From NCBI GenBank assembly GCA_013416795.1, contig RQSC01001193.1, forward strand, positions 1 to 51,734: 51,734 bases of DNA, given 5' to 3'. Both the position numbers and the translations under genes were made by a program. The notes under the pieces are model-generated. The model did not search any database, was not told the DNA's origin, and saw nothing but the letters and a program-made list of their open reading frames with translations. The stretch comes from Prasinococcaceae sp. CCMP 1430. Its lineage: Eukaryota; Plantae; Prasinodermophyta. How positions within the stretch are numbered: position 1 is the first letter of the stretch; every line of letters begins with the position of its first letter. This document shows positions 7,001-46,517 of this stretch, in pieces.

Positions 7001-10000
7001 GCGGGAAGTTCAGGGTGACTGATTCCGCGATGGGCTCTGAGCCAGTGATGCGAGGCAGCATGTCCGCACCTAGCTCCACCTCGTCGACGCCTTCCGCGTC
7101 AAGGAAGGTGTCAAAGTCGAAGAGCGATGAGTAGTCCGCAACGACGGTATCGAAGTGATGGCGCACCGCCTTCATCACGATTGCGAGCCTGTACATCCTC
7201 CCTGGCGGGGCACTCTTCGCCGTAGGGACAACAAAGTGCTGGAACAAGTCTGCTGCCTCTCGCCGCGTTGCTATGTTTATGTCTTCGAGCTTCATGTCCT
7301 TGGTGACGAGGTTTTCCTTGTCGCGAAGGACCTCCACCGATGTGTCGAGCGTCACGCCGTACAGGGGCTTCAGACACTTCGCGAGCGCGGCGTCCACCAC
7401 TTCCTCCACCTCGGTGACAACCTCGATGGCATCCTCTGGCTCGATTTTCTGCGAGCGTCGCGTTTTTCGTGACTCGGCCGCCGCCTCAAGGGCCTGCAAA
7501 CGTTTCGAGAGCGCGCCCTTGCGCTGCACCAGGCGCCCGAGCATGTGGCGCAGAAAGGCCGCGTTGCGGGACTTGATTGCACCACCGCCGCTGTTGGTAA
7601 GTAGCTCCTGCAGCATCAGCAGCAGGCGGGTCTCCCTCCGCGACGCCTCGGCGAGGGATGTGTCCTGAACCTCCAGGGCCAACGCCGCCAGCGAAGAGAA
7701 CGCCAGCGACGCGTCAGAGAGCGCAGTCGCGTCCGTTCCGAGGTTGATCGCCCGCGCCCTCTTCTTTTTGATCGTGTTCGCGCCCTCGGCCATGCGCGCA
7801 TCGATCGCATCCATGACGCGCACCATAAGATCGCGTACGACCTTGAGAGGCACAGCCGCCACGCGCGCAGCGGCGCGTTCGCCGCCATTCTCGGCAACGA
7901 GGGCCACGGCGCGCCTCGCGCTCTCCGACACGGCCCGCAGGACCTCGCCGAGACTTGGCATGTTGGGATGCGACAGGCTCACAGACCGGCGCTTGGCCTT
8001 CTTGCTAGCCTCGCGGCTCACGCGGGTGAGCAGTCCGTCAAGAGTCACCAATTCGAGGAGAAGGCTGCGATCGCCGAACAAGTTGTCGAGTCCAGTATCA
8101 CCGTCGCCTTCCGTCTCAGCGTTCTTTGTGACGCCCGAGAGCGACTCGAACGCCTTGATCGCAATCCACAGCATCTGGGTTTCCTCATCGGTCGTAAAGA
8201 CATTCGAGAACAAACGCGACTTGGATCCCTCCGCGCGCAGGAACGGCCCGAGGTCCTCGAGCATAGCGCGTTCCTGGCCATTCTTGAGCAGCTCCTCCGA
8301 GTTTTGTAGGACTTGCCTGATCTCCAGCTTGCTCAGATATTGGCGGACGACCTCCGGCCTAGGCCCGCAACCGCCGAGGGAAGCCACCGACTCGTCCGGC
8401 AGCTCACCGCCCTCGCCGAAAAGCAGCTTAGCACACTCTTTGAGGTGCATCACGCCGAAATTGAAGTTGCTTTCGTGCATGGCCGCGCGCCCACAGAGCC
8501 AATGCAGCGCGGCCGCCGCCGTGTGAGTGGCCGGGACGCCGAACATGCTCACGGGCAGGGTGTCGACACCCTCGTCGGAGGGGCCTGAGCCCGCGGCGTC
8601 GTGATGCGCGAGCATAGACGCCACTGCCGCGGCCACCGACTCGCTCGCCTTGGAAACGTGGGCTTTCTCTTTCGCAGCCCACTTCTCAGATCTGTCCTCC
8701 GCCCGCTGGTCTTCGTCGTCCTCGTCCTGGTCCTCTTCGTCAAAGGCGATTTCCTCCATGATCTGCTCATCCTTAATGGCGCGCACGGCTGCGATATGGC
8801 ACTCGCCGAGGGCGATCAGTTCCTCGGTATCCCACGAAAAGCCGCCAGCCCCAGCTCCGCCGACCCTGTCCAGGGCGAGCGCCAGTTCGGCGAGGACGGC
8901 TGCAGTCGCAGACTCGTGCGCGGCACCATCGGCGAGAGCACTTTTCAGCACGCGCGCAGCAGCCACCGCCGAGCAGCACTTATTTTCGTTCAGAGCCTCG
9001 ATGCACGATTTGACCGACGCGGCGTCGTGCTCCTGCGGCCGAATCTGCGCGGCTGCATCCGAGGCCGAGGCCGGTTCGGCGGCATCGGAGCCAGCCTCCG
9101 CGGGCGTGTCCTCGGGGGCGCTGCCCGTCTCCGCGTCGACCGCCTCCTCGGGAATGAACGAGGCGAGGGTCTCCTTCGCCGTCTCGACGGTCACAGGCAC
9201 GGCCGCCGCTTTGGCGATCTCTTTCGCCTCCTCTGCCTCACGCACTTCGCGATCACGCACACGGGAAGACTTGCGACTCGGCTCGGGCTTGGACTTGGCC
9301 TTCTTGCCCTTGCCTTTGCCCTTCTCTTTCTCCTGTGCGGTGGGTGCTCGCGCATCGGACGCTTGACGCTCCTTCGGAGCACTGTCGCAGTCCATGTCCT
9401 GCGCATCGGCGCCCGTACCAGTGGCGCCGAGTGCGTCCCCGGCGGGCACCGCCTCGCCTGCCGCGCCGGGCGCTGCGTCGCCGGCGGCGCCAGACGGAAC
9501 AGAGCCCCCAGGCTTCGATCCACCCTCTCCGGGACGTGCAGCTACGTCATCCCCGGTGAGCCGGAGCGCGATCACGCTAGCGCCGTCTTGCCCTGCGCTG
9601 GCACCCCGCAGCTGCTCGACCATCGCCTGCGCCAACGCGGCCCAAGATGCCGTGCACACGCCGACGAACACCTCGGGAACGGTCTCACGCACGTGCGTGG
9701 GGGTGGCCGGCGCGATGGGTTCGGCGTGTTTCGTCTTGGCGCGCTTCGCGGGCCGGGCACTGTGAGTCTTCGCAAGCGCTTCGAACGCGGCTTCGGCGCC
9801 GCCCTCGAGAGCATCCAAGTCGACGGGCGCCGGGTGTCGTGGGTTCATCCTGCGCAGCTTCGCCAGTGCCGCCCTGGCCGCCGCCACGTCACCGACGGCC
9901 GCCGCCGTGCGGCAGAGCCCCTCGAGGACGAGCCAGCTGCTGCCACCAGTGCACAGACAGGCGTTCTCATAGCAGTGTCTCGCCACATGCGGTTGCGCTG

Positions 10001-10373
10001 CTTCCTCGGCGAGCGCTGCCGTGCGTCGCCACAGCGGGCCGTCGTTCGGGTCGATCTCGCAAGCCTCCAGGCTGAAGGCGAGCGCCTCCTCCGGGCGACC
10101 GCCCTTGGCGGCAATTTCCGCGAGGTTCCTGCTTGCCAGGAAGCGCAGCTGTACGATCACGTTCGACTCGAGCGCGCGGCTCTCTTCGGTGCGGAGCTCG
10201 GCGCGCATCTCGCGAAGCACTCCATCGGCGACCGCCTCGTCGCCGGCGACGCGCGCTGCCATCGCCTTCTCATACGCGGCCGTGGCGGCCGCCTGCCGCG
10301 CCTCGGCGCTCGGTCCGCGCTGCTCCGCGGCGGGGACCACCGCGGGCGCCTCATTGATGCCGCGGAAGCCCAT
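4017..10373 (-). CDS. CABIN1: Calcineurin-binding protein 1 (CABIN1; HIRA complex subunit)-like, about 2118 aa, apparently intronless
   Basis: First ATG at 10373 (MGFRGINE). N-terminal TPRs (LRFLASRNLA, EIDPNDGPLWRR, ARHCYENA). C-terminal CABIN1-like blocks: SDLLFNSERILGWLSLAKVYD, WLWRYYCGKLHSKLG, EPFYTMHATRLK, WFHKAAYRLA. Confidence 0.85.
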   Translation of the reverse strand: MGFRGINEAPAVVPAAEQRGPSAEARQAAATAAYEKAMAARVAGDEAVADGVLREMRAELRTEESRALESNVIVQLRFLASRNLAEIAAKGGRPEEALAFSLEACEIDPNDGPLWRRTAALAEEAAQPHVARHCYENACLCTGGSSWLVLEGLCRTAAAVGDVAAARAALAKLRRMNPRHPAPVDLDALEGGAEAAFEALAKTHSARPAKRAKTKHAEPIAPATPTHVRETVPEVFVGVCTASWAALAQAMVEQLRGASAGQDGASVIALRLTGDDVAARPGEGGSKPGGSVPSGAAGDAAPGAAGEAVPAGDALGATGTGADAQDMDCDSAPKERQASDARAPTAQEKEKGKGKGKKAKSKPEPSRKSSRVRDREVREAEEAKEIAKAAAVPVTVETAKETLASFIPEEAVDAETGSAPEDTPAEAGSDAAEPASASDAAAQIRPQEHDAASVKSCIEALNENKCCSAVAAARVLKSALADGAAHESATAAVLAELALALDRVGGAGAGGFSWDTEELIALGECHIAAVRAIKDEQIMEEIAFDEEDQDEDDEDQRAEDRSEKWAAKEKAHVSKASESVAAAVASMLAHHDAAGSGPSDEGVDTLPVSMFGVPATHTAAAALHWLCGRAAMHESNFNFGVMHLKECAKLLFGEGGELPDESVASLGGCGPRPEVVRQYLSKLEIRQVLQNSEELLKNGQERAMLEDLGPFLRAEGSKSRLFSNVFTTDEETQMLWIAIKAFESLSGVTKNAETEGDGDTGLDNLFGDRSLLLELVTLDGLLTRVSREASKKAKRRSVSLSHPNMPSLGEVLRAVSESARRAVALVAENGGERAAARVAAVPLKVVRDLMVRVMDAIDARMAEGANTIKKKRARAINLGTDATALSDASLAFSSLAALALEVQDTSLAEASRRETRLLLMLQELLTNSGGGAIKSRNAAFLRHMLGRLVQRKGALSKRLQALEAAAESRKTRRSQKIEPEDAIEVVTEVEEVVDAALAKCLKPLYGVTLDTSVEVLRDKENLVTKDMKLEDINIATRREAADLFQHFVVPTAKSAPPGRMYRLAIVMKAVRHHFDTVVADYSSLFDFDTFLDAEGVDEVELGADMLPRITGSEPIAESVTLNFPRAWDARGVSDARAEDPNAGTHSTLHWLCFNAEDPIQNSEVAQVMHDRHDEDFVKPLSDMLKSDLLFNSERILGWLSLAKVYDDALDLILNDAAKVMDCASWERDGADEWFPDGYFMRERVATFRRRSRRCLLRALAMIKATGSTEPGMDMATVAEYLGLASYDMLQRVPPVHDMLGPLPGKGEAAYVATVRFALAAFDIASNNPPIVDEEYLKRIAPDRRGIDQGWLWRYYCGKLHSKLGEHTEALDAIAKAARMAPGIVEPFYTMHATRLKMLERAAEDGDDAKLRAVAKIAAEYCCEQSACRGVKAKDLARRMHADGIAAMAKVWSFSKWFHKAAYRLALARLSPLSVPDPTSEAAVSGAIEAGIDDLVSLFVVRGYTGINMWEITEGSIFSGAAGGRKKRAEHRREVYEQAARNSSGAGEAEGATASKRSDDGSPGAAPWSAAHPLLLILRGESSRKFIGCLRKCIALYVRLLAERGAEGHMQSLQTLEKLISVISSKGDYYNVLTDMTAMLKGAYGAALARALDATEGSDDHDAIDAMAFEFYWSCVKGERGADALGSALAAAKRLFAATSFGMLAARADRWEPALACASIAPPTEPPLVRPAAAGQLASAPTSEAGASADEAQPEVADVAAPAGAPRAAGDASQADAADGSDRPGDDAKDEFFDASERLEGEAQVAGGGGSDGGAASAREDAQGKQQGGARDSPAEHLEGHADEVEREDPEGDSSGGWSVESSFLQATQRHICALPAADEPGKRWMLKRLDLISQVMRDVSARYPSPRLRTRPVRALMGTLGDTVASMAREVFEEMCAIVREKGRYPAREDALAEFESALQALGAVYYIRERLGAEGDRLTELALEVTGFVEPKVSVESAIKLAERAKGHAGVFHIIKAFKNRLAKEARAAEAAKAVAEAKAAEAAKACEAAKEEADKACEVAQEEAAKQEAMNAAVIGAVAAAAAGAAEVNASEPAPADEKDVQDAPAPMDTDATTDE

Positions 10374-11073
10374 CGTGGTTGCCGGCCCGCGCGCCCCCGC
10401 ACGCTGCGCAGAGCACGAGCAACCCGCGCGGCGCAACAGGAGCAGGCGGAGCGCGGCGCCGCGCGGTTTCGACGAGCAGCGGCAGCGGCGGCGGCGGCGG
10501 CGGCGGCGCCACCGGGGGAGGGGGGGGGGGAGGGGGGCTGCGCGCAGTGTGGCACGCCAACGCAGCGTTTCGAATGCGAATGCGCACCGTCGATGCCGTA
10601 TGAATTGAATTCCATTCTTTGGGCTGCAGCAGGCAAATTGCTTTGTTTTTTCAGTTTTGGACTCTTTTCTCTGTTCTTTCGCGCGCGTTTTCGGCCTCGG
10701 GTGCGATTTGATGAAGGACGCGCCGCAGAATGCTCTCCCGTGGGTACTTTTATCGTTCGTTTGAGGGTTTTATTCCGCGGCTGTTGTGTTCGGTCGCGTT
10801 CGGCGCGAATCGATGCGGCGGCGCGTTTTCGCGTTCGCGCGCGCGCGGGCGCGGGTGGGGTGGGGTGGGGTGGCACACGTGCGGCGCGGGGCGCCCCCCC
10901 CCCCAACCCCAACCCCAACCACCTCCCCGGCCGTCCCGCTCCGCGCTTCTCGCGCGTGCGCCGACGGCTGTGGTGCGCGAGGGGGGTGAAGCGCGGGGGC
11001 GCGGCGCGGCAGTACCTCGAGCACGCGGCGGGCCCGCGCGGCCTCGGGGCGCCGCGCGGCTGCCCTGAGCGGC

Positions 11074-26685: not shown

Positions 26686-29600
26686 CTACTGCTTCTTGCC
26701 GCCGCGCGGTCCACCCTTGAGGTTGTGCCAGAAGCCCTTCTTGCTCGGAGTGCGCGCGCTCGGTGACGGCTTCGGCCTCATCGAAGCGACGGCAGCAGAG
26801 CTCGATGGCGTGCCCGGCGCACCGACGACGCCCGGCACCGACAGCGCGGCTGACGCTTTTGGCAACGGGCTCCCGGGGCTCGGCGCCATCTGGGCGTGAT
26901 AGTTGCTGGGTGCCGGCGACGGCGGCACCGCCGAAGCGCCCTCGGCACGCAGCCTCTCCACGCCGCCGTTGAGAGCCCTGCCCGCGGCACCCACCTTGTC
27001 GGCGCCCGCCGCCGGCTTGGCGGGGCTCGCCTCGCCCCCACCTGGGGCGGTAGCCGGCAGCGTAAAGGGGGGGAGAGTGCCCTCAGCCTCGCTCCCGACG
27101 ACGGGCGGCACACCAATGCCGAAATTGTTTTCGCCACGGACTGCCGCGAGCGCGGCCGTGCCGGTGCGCCCCGACAGACCGTCGAAGCCCACCAAGGGAC
27201 CGTTGCGGCCGTCCCATGAATCCACGCTGTTCCTGTGGCTGACGGCGCTGCCCGTTTCGTCTCCCGAGCCCACATCGCCGCCGCCGTCGCTGCTGCTGCC
27301 ATCCTTGCTGCCGTCCCACCACTTGTTGAGCACGCCGAACGATAGCTTCTTGCTCATGACCGACTGCTCCACATCGTCGGCGCCGTCGACGATCTCAGCA
27401 AAGGCCTGCAGCACGGCCAGCGCGTCCTCGGAGTTCCCGACGTAGTATTTGCCGAGTGAGGTGCGCCTCCCCACCGTCACGGTGTAGAGCTTGGGCGCCG
27501 GCCCGAACAGGTCCGTCCGCCATGTCATACGCCTGCGCCCAAGCAATGCTGCCGCGCGTTCGGCCGTCGCACCGTTCGCCTGGTCGTCACCGGTCGAAGT
27601 GCACGCCGTGAGCAGCTCCATCTTGACCATTGGCCACTCATCCTCGCTGATCTGCCTGCCGTGATACGACACGCGAAACTCGTTGAGTACTTCTGCGCCC
27701 TCCGTGTTGATTAGTGCCTTGTGAACCGAGAAGCCCAGCCGGCCCATAGCTGTTGTCAGGTCACGCAGCAGCTCCGACCGATCCTTGCCCCTGATCTTTA
27801 CGATGGAGTAGGCCCCGCCGCCTTCGGAGGGCTGCGCTTCAGGCTCGCCGTTGCTAAGCGAGATGTCGTACGCCGAGGACGACGAAGACGCCATTGACTT
27901 GGGCGCGGCGCCGTCAGCCGCGAGCTCGCCGGCCTCCGCGGAGGCGGGCACATCTCCGGTACTGGGCGCGAGGGACGCTGCCATTTGGGCATCGAGCGCG
28001 GCCAGCGGCCTCGGCGGCGACGGCGGATCCGCACTGGCTGCGCCGAGATCTCCGGCCTCCGCCGCCGCGCTGGCTGGGCTCGCTTCGGTCGCATCGCACT
28101 CGAAGTAGCTGAAGAGGTCCTCGTCCTTGCTGAGAAAGTGCCCCATGACGAACACGTAATCGAAGAGCGACGTTCTGGGGCAGGCGCTTTGGGGCGCGCT
28201 CTCCGCGCCCATCTGCGCTCCGTCCTCGGGCCCGTGCACAGATTTGTCGCCCTCGTGCAGGTGGGGCGCAATCTCGCTGAGGATTTTCTCCAGCGCGATG
28301 CCCTTGCTGATGCCAACGGGGCGCACCTCCACACTTCGCGCGCCCTGGAAAACGTCCACTGCAGAATTCGAAATCGGGCCCGTCCACAGGTGCTGGAGCA
28401 TGTCGCGGGCCTGCGCGCGGCCGAACTCGGGGTCGCTGTGCTTGTACGACCATACGATGGACGTCTCCCTCGTGTGTACTGTCGAGCGCGGCGTGCGCTC
28501 ACAGAAGTAGTCCATGACCATCTGTACGCTCTCGATCCAGCCCAGGTTGAGCGTGCTCGGGTGGTGGATCGCGCGCCAGACAGCGCCACGCTCGGGGGGG
28601 CGCAGGAATACGCCATTTTCCGCCGCGAGCCACACCGGCAGGTCACCCATGAGATCCTCGATCGTGTGTCGCTCCGAGCCCGTGAACACGAGCACCGTGG
28701 TGCAGGGGTCCGCGGCAAGCCGTGAGAGCAGCTCCTTCGCAGCCGGGTGCATGCGCGTGCGCCCCTTGACAGTGTCGTACCTCCGCTTGCCGTCGCGCTG
28801 CTCCATGGAGCTGGTCGTGAGCGTGCCGTTGTAGCCGATGAGGACCAGCCGACGCTTTGCTCCACTGAAGGCGTCGACAGCCTCGTTGTACGGGAGTGGC
28901 ATCGTGTACGACGCCGTTCGTAGCTGCTCCTCAACGTGCGTGTCGTTGAGCTCGCTGACAAAGTTGTCCGCCCACGCCTGTGCTGTGTGGGCGACCACGT
29001 GTGCGAAGTTGTGCCTGTGGCGCTCCTCGCGCTCCTCTTCGGACATCGTGAGCGCCTCCTTGATCCCGTGCGACATGTCGGTCACGTCCCACGGGTTCAC
29101 GAGAATAGCGCCGGCGCCCAGGCTCTGCGCAGCGCCCGCGAACTCGCTCAGCATCAGCACACCCTTCTTGGAGCCCGTGTGGCACGCCACGTACTCGTAG
29201 CTCACCAGATTCATGCCGTCGCGCAGCGACGTCACGAGCGCCAGGTCGGTGACCGCGTACAGAGCGCACAGCTCGTGGAAGGGCATCGAGCGATCAAGGT
29301 GGTGGATCGGCACGCTGTCCAGCGTGCCGAAGCGCCCGTTGACTCGCCCCACGATCTCGTGCACCTGGGAACGCAGCGCCTTGTATTCAGGCACGTCCAC
29401 GCGCGTGGGTACCGCGATCTGCACGAGCAAGACGCGCGAGCGCCACTCGGGGTTCTCCTCGAGGAACTTCTCGAACGCCAGGAGCTTCTGTGGGATGCCC
29501 TTGATGACGTCGAGCCTGTCCACGCCGAGCATGACTTTCTTGCCCGCGAAGCGCTCGCGCAGCATGTGCACGTGCTGCCGCACGGGCTCCGTCCGCAGTG

Positions 29601-31301
29601 TTTGCCAGAACCTCTCCGGATCGATGCCGATGGGAAAGGCGCACACGCGTATCACACGCCCGTTGTCCTCGACGCCGGCCGGCGTCCCCTCGAGCCCCAG
29701 GATGCGCGTGCAGGCGCTCACGAAGTGGCGCGCGTAGTCGTACGTGTGGAAGCCCGTGAGGTCGGCGTGCAGCACGCCGCGCAGGATCTCCGAGCGCAGC
29801 GGCAGCGTGCGGAAGATCTCGCTCGACGGAAACGGCGTGTGCAAGAACCATCCCACCTTCATGCTCGGGCGCATTTCTTTCAGGTATTGCGGCAACATGC
29901 ACAGGTGGTAGTCGTGGCACCACACGACATCTCCCTCCCTGTACACCGTGAGCACCGCGCGGCTGAAGAGCCGGTTCGCCCGCTGGTACGCAGACCACTG
30001 TGAGCGCGCCGTCTGCGCAGCGTCAAGCTTCTCATGCGTGGGCAGCGGGATGTAGTGGAAGAGCGGCCAAAGCACGTTGTTGCTGTAGCCATTGTAATAC
30101 AGCTCGTACGTGCGGGCGTCCACGAACACCGGCAGGCACCCCTTGCTCGCCAGCGCCGCCGTGAGCTTCCGCTGCTCCACCGGGTCGCTCACCTCGACGC
30201 CTGGATGGCCGATCCACGTCGTGTCGTAGTTGTCGCGCACACCCATCAGCGCGCTCACCAGCCCGCCCGCGTTGCCTGTGAGCTTCCATCCGCCGTCCGG
30301 GCGCCGCTCCGCGCTCACCGGCAGGCGGTTCGCCACCACGAGGAGCCGCTGGCGGGGTTGCGGCGGGGCACCCAGCGGCAGCGATCCATCCGCCCCGTGC
30401 GCCGCGCCTCCGCCGACGACGCTGGCGGTGCGCGGCGAGCTCATTGCGCCGACGCGGCCCCCTTGGACGAGGCTGCCCGCTCGCACGCGCACGGACGAGC
30501 CCGAGCCGTTCGAACTCGCGAGGGAGCCGTTGTTCTGCAGAGCACGCAGCGCCTGCTGCGCCTCGATGAGCCGTGAGAGATCCTCCGCGCTCGAGCTCGG
30601 CGTGGGCTGCGCGAGGTCGTCGCCGCTGGACGAGGTGCGCATGCTCCGCCCCACCGACGCCGAGCGGCGCATGCGCTCCGAGATGAGGCGCTCCACGCGG
30701 CTCGTCGAGATGTAGTTGCTCCTGCTCCGACCGGCGCCGGGAGGAGCGGCGGGGCATCCGTGTGTCAGCACCACGAGGGCACACTCGCCCGCGCATGCGC
30801 GCGCGCGCGCGCACGCGCGAGGCAAGGGGGCGGCGCTAGCGCCACGCACATGTTGGAGAGCGACTGGTCCGACGGCAGCGACGCGGACAGCACCGACGCC
30901 GTGCGGGGCAACCCCGGCGTACCCAGCAGCTCAATGCCGTTCCCGCCTCCACCCCACGCCCCCACGAGCGACGCCACGCTGCCGTCGCGGCTCATGCTCA
31001 TGTTGCGCGCTTGCTCGAACGACAGCCTTGGCGCGAACGCGCCGCCCGCCGCCGCCGCGCGCCCATCCGGCGTCGAGCGCCGCCGCTCCCCCAGCAGGCC
31101 GGCGAGGCTGCCTGACGAGCCCACCCCGCCATGCGCCGCGTACACGTGGTCGTCCACGCCACCTCCTGCGACCGCCCCCTTGAATATTTCCGCGATGCCG
31201 CTCATCGAGTTGCTCGCCGGGCCGCTCTCGCTGCCGCCAGCGCTGCCACCCCCATTGTCACCCTCGACGGCGATGCCAGGCACGATGAACGGGCGCGACA
31301 T
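26686..31301 (-). CDS. TPS1: Class I trehalose-6-phosphate synthase (GT20 + TPP-like HAD domain) with an inserted ACT-like domain; complement(join(26686..30721,30850..31301)), 1495 aa
   Basis: SRVERL N-terminal motif, RLLVVANRLP, VWCHDYHL, GWFLHTPFPSSE, GVDRLDVIKGIPQK, RDGMNLVSYEYV, LSEFAGAAQSLG, and GYNGTL (degenerate HAD motif I). Intron 30722..30849 (gtgcgt...gcag) joins the two ORFs in phase. Confidence 0.95.
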
Positions 31302-43731: not shown

Positions 43732-43911
43732 CGCGTGCAGCGCCAGCCGAGCCCGTAGGGCCCGCCCTGAGAGGCCTACGGGTCAGGGCCGGCCACGCGC
43801 GCCGCACGCTGGTGGTTGACCCCGCTGGAGCAGGGTTCGCACGTTGCGGCGGCGCGCGGCGGCGGCAGAGGGGTGGCGAGTGGGTTGAGGGATGGGGGTG
43901 GCGCGGGGGGC

Positions 43912-45340
43912 ATGCGACCACGAACGCTTGCCGCGGCCGCGTTCGGATGCGGGGCGCTCGCGGCGGCTGCCGCGGGAGCCGCGCGTGACGACAGGGTGCT
44001 CAGCAACGAGCTCGCGTTCCTGCGCGACCTGCCGAAAATCTTCAGAGGTGAGTGTGCTGGGGCACCGCGCGATCGGAGGAGCTTGCCTGCGAGCGGCCGC
44101 TGACACTGCTGCTTGCTGCCGTCGCCACACGCACCGACGGCGCGCGCGCGCGCATCCGCGCGCCTTCCCACGATCTCTCGCTCTCTCTTGCGCACGCTCT
44201 GGGCGCGCGTGTGCAGGCAAGTGGGAGGGGCCCGGCCTGCACCCGCTCAACCCGGGCACGCTCATCGACCTCGTGCGCTGCGGCCCGGCACTCGAGTCGG
44301 TCGAGGAGTTCGCGCGTGCCAAGCTTCCGTGGGGTTGCAGCTCGTCGATTGCGGTGGTCGATCTGGACACCGGTGACCACGCGTTCGTCAACGCCACGGA
44401 GGTCTTCCCGGCCGCGTCGACCATAAAACTGCCAGTGCTCGTCGCCCTCTACGAGGCGGTCGACAGGGGTCACGTATCAATGGCCGAGGCGCTTGAGCTG
44501 CGCGAAGAGCTCCTTGGCGCGCACAGCGGCGGAATGCAGTACCGCCCGCTGGGTACGGAATTCACGGTGGGCGAGACCGCGCACCAGATGGCCGCCGTCA
44601 GTGACAACACTGCGACCAACATGCTCATCGCCAGGCTCGGTGGCTTCGAGACGCTCAACCAGCAATTCAAGCGCTGGGGTATGCAGGACACCGTGCTGCG
44701 GCAGAAGTTGCCTGACCTCGACGGCCACAACACGACCTCTGCGCGAGATCTCGCGTACTTGCTCACGCTCGTCGACACTGGCCACATCCTCGGGCTGCGC
44801 TCGCGGGATCGCCTGCTCCTGACAATGACCGAGTGCTCCAACGAGGCCATGCTTCGATCGAGCGTGAGGCCCGGGGCGCACGTGGCGAACAAGACAGGTG
44901 ACATCGGGTTTGTGGTGGTGAGTGTACACGTGCGCCGCTCCAAGCAAGCCTCACACGCGTGACCGTTCCCCCCTCGCGCGCGCGAGCTGACGTGCCGCCC
45001 CGCACCTGTCTCACGCCCGCACGCTCGCGCGCGCGCGCGCGCATTCCAGGGCGACGCGGGGCTCGTGACCACCGTCAAGGGGCGGCGCTACGTGGCGGTG
45101 GGCTTCGCGCGCCGTCCGTACAACGAGGAGGCCGGCAGCCGCTACCTACGCTCGGTGTTTGAGCGTGCGCACGACGCGCTCGACACGCAGCACCCTGACG
45201 CGGCCGTCGCGGCCATCGAGTATCCTGTGGTGGGCACGGCGCTGTACGACGAGTTCGTCGAGGCCATGCGCGACCGCTCGCCCGACGGCGTGCGGCATCG
45301 AAAGGAGGTCGTTGAGCGTCGCATGGCAGGGCGCTGGTAA
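43912..45340 (+). CDS. Class A beta-lactamase-fold serine hydrolase, cyanobacterial PBP-A type; join(43912..44047,44217..44917,45050..45340), 375 aa
   Basis: SxxK (STIK, 44417-44428), SDN (44600-44608), KTG (44891-44899) and PDLDG in the omega-loop region. Two in-phase GT-AG introns. Confidence 0.9.
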
Positions 45341-45445: not shown

Positions 45446-46517
45446 TCAATACTCCCTGACGAAGCGCTCGATGAGCGGGTTGACGATTTGGGGCGCTTCG
45501 TCCATCGGGCAGTGTCCAAGACCTTCGAGCTCGACGAACTCGCGCACCATGTCCGCGTAGTACTCCCTGCCCATGTCAACCAGCTCCCACGGATCCTTGG
45601 TGCCCCATCCGAACATCACCTTCTCCTTGGGGAGCTTCTCGAGCAGGTCCTCCGGTAGCGGGCCCGTGCTGTACGAGATGAAGTCAAGAAAGACAGCGGC
45701 GGAGCCTGGGCGCAGCCCCGGCTGCAGCATGCGGTCGACGAGGTCATCGTCAACGGTCGCGGGGTCGGCGTAGGCCTCGCGCAGCACGTTGCGCAGCGCG
45801 CGTGGCTGCGCTATCTGCGCATAGAAGAATTCGCCCACGGGGGTCTCGCGGAGCACCTTCTGCAGAACGCCGACCGCCTTGGACACCAGCGGCGGCTGGC
45901 GCCGCACGTTGAGTCCGCGCAGAGAGATGTTCAGACAGAGCACCGCGCGCACTGCCTCGTCTCCGCCGTCAACCGCCGCCTGCAGGCCCGCCACGCCACC
46001 CACCGAGTTGCACACCAGAAGCACCGGCCCGCCCGCCACCTCGCGCGCGAAGTCCACGAGCTGCGCCCCCCAGTTCTCGAAGTTGTACAACGCATTCACA
46101 CCGCCCGACTCGGCGGGCACAGGCTGGTCCGAGTAGCCGTAGCCGAGCAGGTCGATGGTGAAGACGCGCCTGCCGGTCGACTCCGCGACGGCCCGAGCGT
46201 TCTTCACCCAGTGGTCCGCGTTGCCGCCGAATCCGTGAACCATGACAATGGCGGGCTCGTCCCCGGCGCCTGCAGCGTCGCCGCCCGCGCTCTGGTAGCG
46301 AATGCGGTGGCCGCGCCACTCCCACCACTCATCGGGCAGGCGCAGGTCGCGCCGCGCGCCTGGCAGCTCCCGGGGCGGCGCCGTGGCCGTTGCCGCCGCA
46401 GCCGCGACGCGGCCACGCGGGCGAACGTGGGCCGCGAGCGGGCGATCGCGCACCAGCGCGCGCCCGGCACGCGCGAATTCTAATGCCGGAGCAGCAGCGA
46501 GCGGCGGATGCGTGCAT
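45446..46517 (-). CDS. Alpha/beta-fold hydrolase (pheophytinase-like plastid family); start needs an intron (46360..46453) or a frame correction
   Basis: VHGFGGNADHW, IDLLGYGYSD, CNSVGG, FGWGTKDPW and LGHCPMDEAP. Confidence 0.88.

Follow-up and report, generated by a model that had tools for sequence, protein, structure and literature searches.

A spliced nuclear gene for a PBP-A-type penicillin-binding protein in the green alga Prasinoderma coloniale and its probable descent from the plastid ancestor

PBP-A is described as the closest relative, among penicillin-binding proteins (PBPs), of the class A beta-lactamases, and the family has been called exclusive to cyanobacteria (Dorrazehi et al. 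2024, PMC11189452). A gene on contig RQSC01001193.1 from Prasinococcaceae sp. CCMP 1430 (Prasinodermophyta) therefore raises the questions of how a protein of this type comes to be encoded in a eukaryote and what it might do there. The whole stretch of DNA that was analysed, here referred to as the window, covers 51,734 nucleotides (51.7 kb). We report that the spliced coding sequence of this gene is 1128 nt long and that its 375-residue product is identical to Prasinoderma coloniale PRCOL_00001612-RA (EukProt; P0002); hence the gene is annotated in a public genome, where it is a eukaryotic member of a known family that has gone unreported as PBP-A. The coordinates of the gene, its motifs and its immediate neighbours are given in Table 1.

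Table 1. Features of the PBP-A locus, numbered from the first letter of the window
Feature	Position	Strand	Remarks
ORF of 645 aa	41794-43731	-	divergent, 180-nt spacer; weak pyridine-nucleotide-disulphide oxidoreductase match
Upstream region	43732-43911	+	180 nt between the divergent ORF (start 43731, -) and the start codon
Exon 1	43912-44047	+	start codon, hydrophobic Ala/Gly stretch, linker conserved with the relative P0003; ends in phase 1
Hydrophobic stretch, residues 6-24	43927-43983	+	mean Kyte-Doolittle 1.75
Intron 1	44048-44216	+	169 nt, GTGAGT...CAG; missing in the relative's gene
Exon 2	44217-44917	+	bulk of the PBP-A / class A fold; all catalytic motifs
STIK (S113-K116)	44417-44428	+	exon 2
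SDN (S174-N176)	44600-44608	+	exon 2
LPDLDG (Leu210 first)	44708-44725	+	exon 2
KTGD (K271-T-G273-D274)	44891-44902	+	exon 2
Intron 2	44918-45049	+	132 nt, GTGAGT...CAG; missing in the relative's gene
Exon 3	45050-45340	+	last beta strands, C-terminal helix, ~50-residue tail, stop codon
Alpha/beta hydrolase	45446-46453	-	convergent, 105-nt spacer; neighbour of the PBP-A gene

Exon 2 alone matches the Pfam family Beta-lactamase2 (PF13354) with an E-value of 7e-53. Among all PDB chains the top match is PBP-A of Thermosynechococcus elongatus (Tll2115; 2j7v/2j8y) with E 6e-51 over 191 residues without gaps, which places it 37 orders of magnitude ahead of the next entries (E 5e-14 or weaker). An AlphaFold model, generated from 55 family members and with pLDDT >95 over the domain, superimposes on PBP-A with an rmsd of 1.0 Å and a TM score of 0.94-0.97, at 42% identity (about 42-46% over the catalytic domain); the next structural matches are beta-lactamases at 2.4-3.0 Å and 20-27% identity. 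Moreover, Ser61, Lys64, Asp123, Asn124, Asp160, Lys219 and Gly221 (PBP-A numbering; +52 gives that of the P. coloniale protein) are invariant in the 55-sequence alignment. Leu210 aligns with Leu158 of PBP-A, the only column in which the wild-type and L158E mutant chains differ, and this position is occupied by Leu in 54 of the 55 aligned family members. The original prediction, which was made from the letters of the DNA and claimed intact STIK, SDN and KTG motifs, PDLDG at the Glu166 site and a close likeness to the Thermosynechococcus protein with its Leu for Glu166, is thus borne out both by the reading of exon 2 and by the structural comparison. We conclude that the P. coloniale protein belongs to the low-molecular-weight penicillin-binding proteins, and among these to the PBP-A family, which is reportedly also the subject of Urbach et al. 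2008/2009.

The P. coloniale protein shares with Tll2115 the fold, SxxK, SDN and KTGD, the Leu at the Glu166 position and a hydrophobic segment N-terminal to the domain. In contrast to Tll2115, however, it is encoded in a eukaryotic nucleus by a gene with two introns and host codon use, its cytoplasmic N-tail is cut down to five residues in the annotated model, and it has a C-terminal tail of its own of ~50 residues, which is common to the P. coloniale protein and the Prasinoderma relative described below only. It also differs in having His148 (44522-44524) where Tll2115 has Glu96, the proposed discriminator for amidated stems. Of the 55 aligned sequences, 43 have Gly at this position, 10 have Glu and only two, both from Prasinoderma, have His; as a family marker Glu96 was dropped because it is found in some members only.

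The exon-intron structure could be verified by comparison with an 82%-identical relative represented by many contigs of marine metagenomes (P0003/P0271; loci L002-L004), in which the same gene is a single uninterrupted ORF. The relative's protein is collinear with the P. coloniale product through both exon junctions in the protein alignment, and the DNA alignment shows a 132-nt gap at intron 2. The global DNA alignment placed the gap for intron 1 wrongly, and this intron is based on the frame shift together with the protein alignment; the short exon 1 gave no match of its own with tblastn. Since the relative's ORF spans both junctions, the splice sites are confirmed and both introns prove to be peculiar to the lineage of P. 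coloniale, in agreement with the earlier reading of two spliceosomal introns in a nuclear gene. Both introns carry alternating (GC)n tracts close to their 3' ends (44130-44160 and 45025-45045). A mechanical ORF on the forward strand (43892-44962) begins with an ATG in another frame, 20 nt ahead of the true start codon, runs through intron 1 and continues in frame with exon 2; prokaryotic gene callers turn it into a 302-residue artefact protein (P0001; 16 member sequences in a public collection).

In a search of 1.84 billion cluster representatives the best match beyond the query and the Prasinoderma relative was a 538-residue protein from Mesostigma viride (P0121; E 4e-78), followed by P0122/P0267 from a further flagellate alga (E 4e-72), and cyanobacterial proteins appeared only after both algae (E 3e-65 downward). 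When one genome from each prokaryotic species was scanned, at least 586 relatives were obtained, and the best 80 of these are cyanobacterial except for three contigs from oddly labelled MAGs. The 120 best matches to a profile of the eukaryote sequences include no additional eukaryote with a name; P0122 is not among them either, so this list is no proof of absence elsewhere. The eukaryote sequences are 41-44% identical to each other over their full length, which is approximately as far apart as each of them is from cyanobacteria.

The source of P0122/P0267 is a eukaryote, and a 24-kb contig that carries a copy of 85% identity also encodes Ebp2, DRC10, a protein kinase, a P-type ATPase, FKBP, LrgB and DUF1995. 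This alga is GC-rich and intron-poor, and its PBP-A gene is intronless with a long basic N-terminal extension (L089 1-20606, gene 9458-10606; L001 3635-5200); among its other genes are flagellar (DRC10) and plastid-type (LrgB, DUF1995) families. An additional homologue of 460 residues (P0199) was detected on transcript-like contigs of ~50% GC from two sequencing runs (L091 201-1583 and L092 246-1628). It clusters with Mesostigma inside the eukaryote clade, and its motifs are altered (ADDN for SDN, KAG for KTG and Met for Leu158); judging from these replacements it may be a non-catalytic copy.

The phylogenetic analysis placed the eukaryote sequences together. In a 100-row tree rooted on four true class A beta-lactamases, four eukaryote sequences form one clade (SH-aLRT 99), and this clade lies within a 28-row group (99) that also includes Gloeomargaritales and a second Nostocales/Microcoleus paralogue clade. 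A careful 66-row tree, based on the catalytic domain alone, has a eukaryote clade of five sequences (99/98); the link to the Gloeomargaritales neighbourhood is supported at 95/26, i.e. with weak SH-aLRT support, and the order inside the eukaryote clade is weakly supported (84/48). When all 150 representatives were analysed using FastTree, P0199 joined the eukaryote clade, and the cyanobacterial neighbours included, weakly, a cluster with a Gloeobacterales MAG. The eukaryote branches are long and their composition is odd, and the branch to the beta-lactamase outgroup corresponds to 1.5-2.5 changes/site in the trees. As anticipated, no grouping with non-cyanobacterial lactamases was seen, the true beta-lactamases being a distant outgroup in both trees. 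The expectation that the gene should nest in Cyanobacteria held in part: the eukaryote clade is placed among cyanobacterial PBP-As by Gloeomargaritales, but strict nesting is favoured without reaching significance, and a constraint that keeps the cyanobacteria together with the eukaryotes outside is 22 lnL units worse and not rejected (p-AU 0.099). A constraint making the eukaryotes sister to Gloeomargaritales is 10.6 lnL units worse and is not rejected either (p 0.27).

Gloeomargaritales is the lineage held to be closest to plastids, and Prasinodermophyta and Streptophyta split at the base of the green plants. Our trees point to one old eukaryote clade that extends over Prasinodermophyta and Streptophyta and has its nearest kin among cyanobacteria. 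A single old clade with cyanobacterial kin that include the plastid-nearest lineage is the pattern predicted by endosymbiotic gene transfer, and in view of these sequence relationships the gene was most likely inherited from the plastid ancestor by this route. Among eukaryotes the gene has a scattered occurrence (Prasinoderma, Mesostigma and two or three further organisms), and together with the weakly supported branching order within the clade this would also suit an alternative in which a single algal lineage acquired the gene from a cyanobacterium at a later time, by horizontal transfer, and perhaps passed it on to other algae. The patchiness, however, parallels the known repeated loss of plastid peptidoglycan. 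A late transfer also sits poorly with a single clade that covers two phyla parted at the base of the green plants, with the low mutual identity of its members, which is about their distance to cyanobacteria, and with neighbours that are deep lineages (Gloeomargaritales and, weakly, the cluster with the Gloeobacterales MAG), as expected for plastid-derived genes. We therefore regard a late transfer as unlikely and favour inheritance from the plastid ancestor.

Where the product acts is a question for its N-terminus. Cyanobacterial PBP-As consist of a basic cytoplasmic tail, one membrane helix and the catalytic domain, in that order. The annotated P. coloniale protein starts with MRPRT, which is followed by a 19-residue Ala/Gly-rich and moderately hydrophobic stretch that aligns with the cyanobacterial membrane anchor; an N-terminal hydrophobic stretch had been noticed from the sequence and is indeed present. 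Upstream of the start codon, 47 open codons (43771-43911) contain no in-frame ATG, and an out-of-frame ATG is found at 43892. In the gene of the relative, the GTG start chosen by the prokaryotic caller is preceded, 48 codons further 5', by the first ATG in frame (L002 6626-6769), and the resulting 48-residue extension, which is Arg/Gly/Ser-rich and acid-free, precedes the same hydrophobic segment and resembles an organelle presequence. The proteins from Mesostigma and the P0122/P0267 alga have 140-190 residues ahead of the hydrophobic segment, with basic, Arg/Gly/Ser-rich N-termini. Three of the four eukaryote versions thus look like a presequence plus an anchor, an arrangement consistent with import and subsequent insertion into the inner envelope.

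With five residues before the stretch and no upstream in-frame ATG, the P. coloniale protein itself resembles one with a signal peptide or anchor rather than a transit peptide; possibly its 5' end is mis-called, or translation starts at a non-AUG codon, or this copy is sent elsewhere. A missing presequence does not refute a plastid location, since no transit peptide is predicted for the moss DipM, a nucleus-encoded peptidoglycan hydrolase of the plastid envelope that nevertheless gets to the surface of the plastid (PMC4015805). The annotated N-terminus could still mean that the same enzyme follows the secretory pathway via its hydrophobic segment and acts extracellularly or at the cell surface, for example on bacterial peptidoglycan or on peptides in the thick wall of the alga, and not on plastid peptidoglycan; P. 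coloniale has such a wall and in addition genes for bacterial-type surface-glycan enzymes (PMC7455551). The DipM precedent speaks against this alternative, and so do the N-termini of the related proteins: in the relative with 82% identity the corresponding segment is preceded by the extension rich in Arg and free of acidic residues, and Mesostigma and the P0122/P0267 alga have additional residues at this place. A further point against it is the full peptidoglycan pathway that both Prasinoderma and Mesostigma retain. We consider secretion of an otherwise unchanged enzyme improbable, and give a slightly smaller chance to the possibility that in P. coloniale the organelle-type presequence seen in the relatives has disappeared and the enzyme now serves the cell surface as a DD-peptidase, either secreted or fixed by a signal anchor. 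If this were true, a wall enzyme of the plastid ancestor would have been re-used by the host outside the plastid, e.g. on bacterial peptidoglycan or on its own unusual wall.

A plastid role presupposes a substrate. The genome paper reports a complete set of the ten core peptidoglycan-synthesis enzymes for P. coloniale as well as for every streptophyte alga (PMC7455551), and with the pathway kept in Prasinoderma and in Mesostigma, a streptophyte alga, the presumed substrate is present in both named hosts; a peptidoglycan layer in Prasinoderma is not yet demonstrated chemically (PMC10784329). The PBP-A of T. elongatus, the only member of its family for which penicillin binding and DD-peptidase activity are known, is a DD-carboxypeptidase and DD-endopeptidase that is inhibited by penicillin G and favours stems amidated on D-iGlu, with Glu96 as the proposed reader of the amide (PMC11189452). 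Every catalytic residue is conserved, and by analogy the chemistry of the T. elongatus enzyme is the best expectation for the P. coloniale protein; owing to the replacement of Glu96 by His148, the substrate preference cannot simply be carried over.

We suggest that Ser113 is acylated by stem peptides ending in D-Ala-D-Ala, as in T. elongatus PBP-A, and that subsequently the terminal D-Ala would be removed (DD-carboxypeptidase) and/or 4-3 cross-links would be cut (DD-endopeptidase). The N-terminal hydrophobic segment, a positional homologue of the cyanobacterial anchor, may tether the domain to the inner envelope of the plastid on the face of the intermembrane space, where its task would be to trim or remodel peptidoglycan that the alga produces with its complete Mur/Ddl/MraY/PBP set. 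The gene would then have been lost wherever plastid peptidoglycan was lost. The full synthesis pathway, the PBP-A identity and the ancestry together make a role in plastid peptidoglycan trimming, which we infer, well motivated. As a joint explanation, a nuclear PBP-A gene from the plastid ancestor whose product trims or remodels plastid peptidoglycan accounts best for the data, and we consider it probably correct.

The papers on plastid peptidoglycan consulted for this analysis name Mur enzymes, Ddl, MraY, a class A PBP, DipM, vanX/vanY and dacB, and no PBP-A-type protein (PMC7455551, PMC4015805, PMC6704402, PMC10784329). The original prediction had called the component little described in eukaryotes, and this agrees both with the omission of PBP-A from these gene lists and with the view of the family as restricted to cyanobacteria. 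That an alga should have a PBP-A is in itself no great surprise, because other wall enzymes persist in algae that have retained peptidoglycan. The known plastid peptidoglycan enzymes of Archaeplastida (class A PBP and DipM; dacB/vanY in Cyanophora) are likewise bacterial-type and nucleus-encoded in algae that keep Mur genes (PMC4015805, PMC6704402, PMC10784329), and DipM is a precedent for a hydrolase active in the intermembrane space. The P. coloniale protein, however, has a class A-like fold and belongs to another family than dacB (S11/S13-type), vanY (M15) and DipM (M23). According to the argument of one review, the enzymes of plant peptidoglycan synthesis are for the most part of non-cyanobacterial origin (PMC8227023); the cyanobacterial ancestry of the P. 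coloniale PBP-A is clearer than what is claimed for most plant Mur enzymes, and an ancestry pointing to cyanobacteria near Gloeomargarita contrasts with the other bacterial origin argued for those.

With the copies in Prasinoderma (nuclear and spliced), in Mesostigma and in one or more further algae, the PBP-A family now includes eukaryotes. A peptidoglycan-trimming enzyme would thereby join the few listed plastid-wall proteins, which in surveys are limited to enzymes of synthesis, DipM and a small number of carboxypeptidases. As such, the gene offers a handle on whether early-branching green algae maintain and remodel a plastid wall, on the stem-peptide chemistry of this wall (amidated or not), and on why beta-lactams disturb plastid division in such lineages.

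The P. coloniale protein shares the overall fold and the acylation machinery, including the three acylation motifs, with class A serine beta-lactamases (TEM, SHV, CTX-M, PSE/CARB), and could on these grounds be taken for a working enzyme of that class that guards the alga or its plastid wall against beta-lactams. In class A beta-lactamases, Glu166 is the general base that activates the deacylating water. The P. coloniale protein lacks it and has Leu210 instead, as nearly all aligned family members have Leu; it is 20-30% identical to the class A enzymes and scores 102 bits against the NCBIfam class A beta-lactamase model NF033103, well below the curated cut-off of 200, and the four true beta-lactamases in the trees, one of which is from Chroococcidiopsis, are the distant outgroup. 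Leu210 and the family scores rule out a true beta-lactamase, and a working beta-lactamase is, in our view, very improbable. Judged from its residues, the P. coloniale protein should be a target of beta-lactams and not an enzyme that breaks them down: beta-lactams would inhibit it by trapping it as a long-lived acyl-enzyme, because there is no Glu166-type base to activate the deacylating water.

The codon use of the gene had been described as host-like, and this proved correct: its GC3 is 0.84 compared with 0.79-0.92 in the other ORFs of the window, and its relative synonymous codon usage (RSCU) correlates with these ORFs at r = 0.93, as against -0.44 to 0.50 with the cyanobacterial homologues. 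Bacterial contamination or an assembly artefact, for which nothing more than the bacterial look of the protein speaks, is ruled out to near certainty by the two GT-AG introns that break the reading frame, by this codon use and by the eukaryotic genes that flank it on both sides in the 51.7-kb window, and orthologues occur on eukaryotic contigs of independent metagenomes.

The flanking ORFs in the window are eukaryotic in character and include RING, MORN, a TPS/TPP fusion, MatE, SDR, FHA, an alpha/beta hydrolase and a dynamin-like GTPase. The two immediate neighbours of the PBP-A gene have no relation to peptidoglycan, no peptidoglycan or plastid-division genes were found near it, and the window as a whole contains none of the peptidoglycan-synthesis genes. 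The PBP-A gene is the sole match in a synteny comparison with the relative's locus; the metagenome loci of the relative also hold Rft-1 and Solute_trans_a genes. Finally, the fusion ORF (26686-30849, reverse strand) is long and intron-free, and corresponds to a trehalose-6-phosphate synthase / phosphatase (Glyco_transf_20, E 7e-179, together with Trehalose_PPase).
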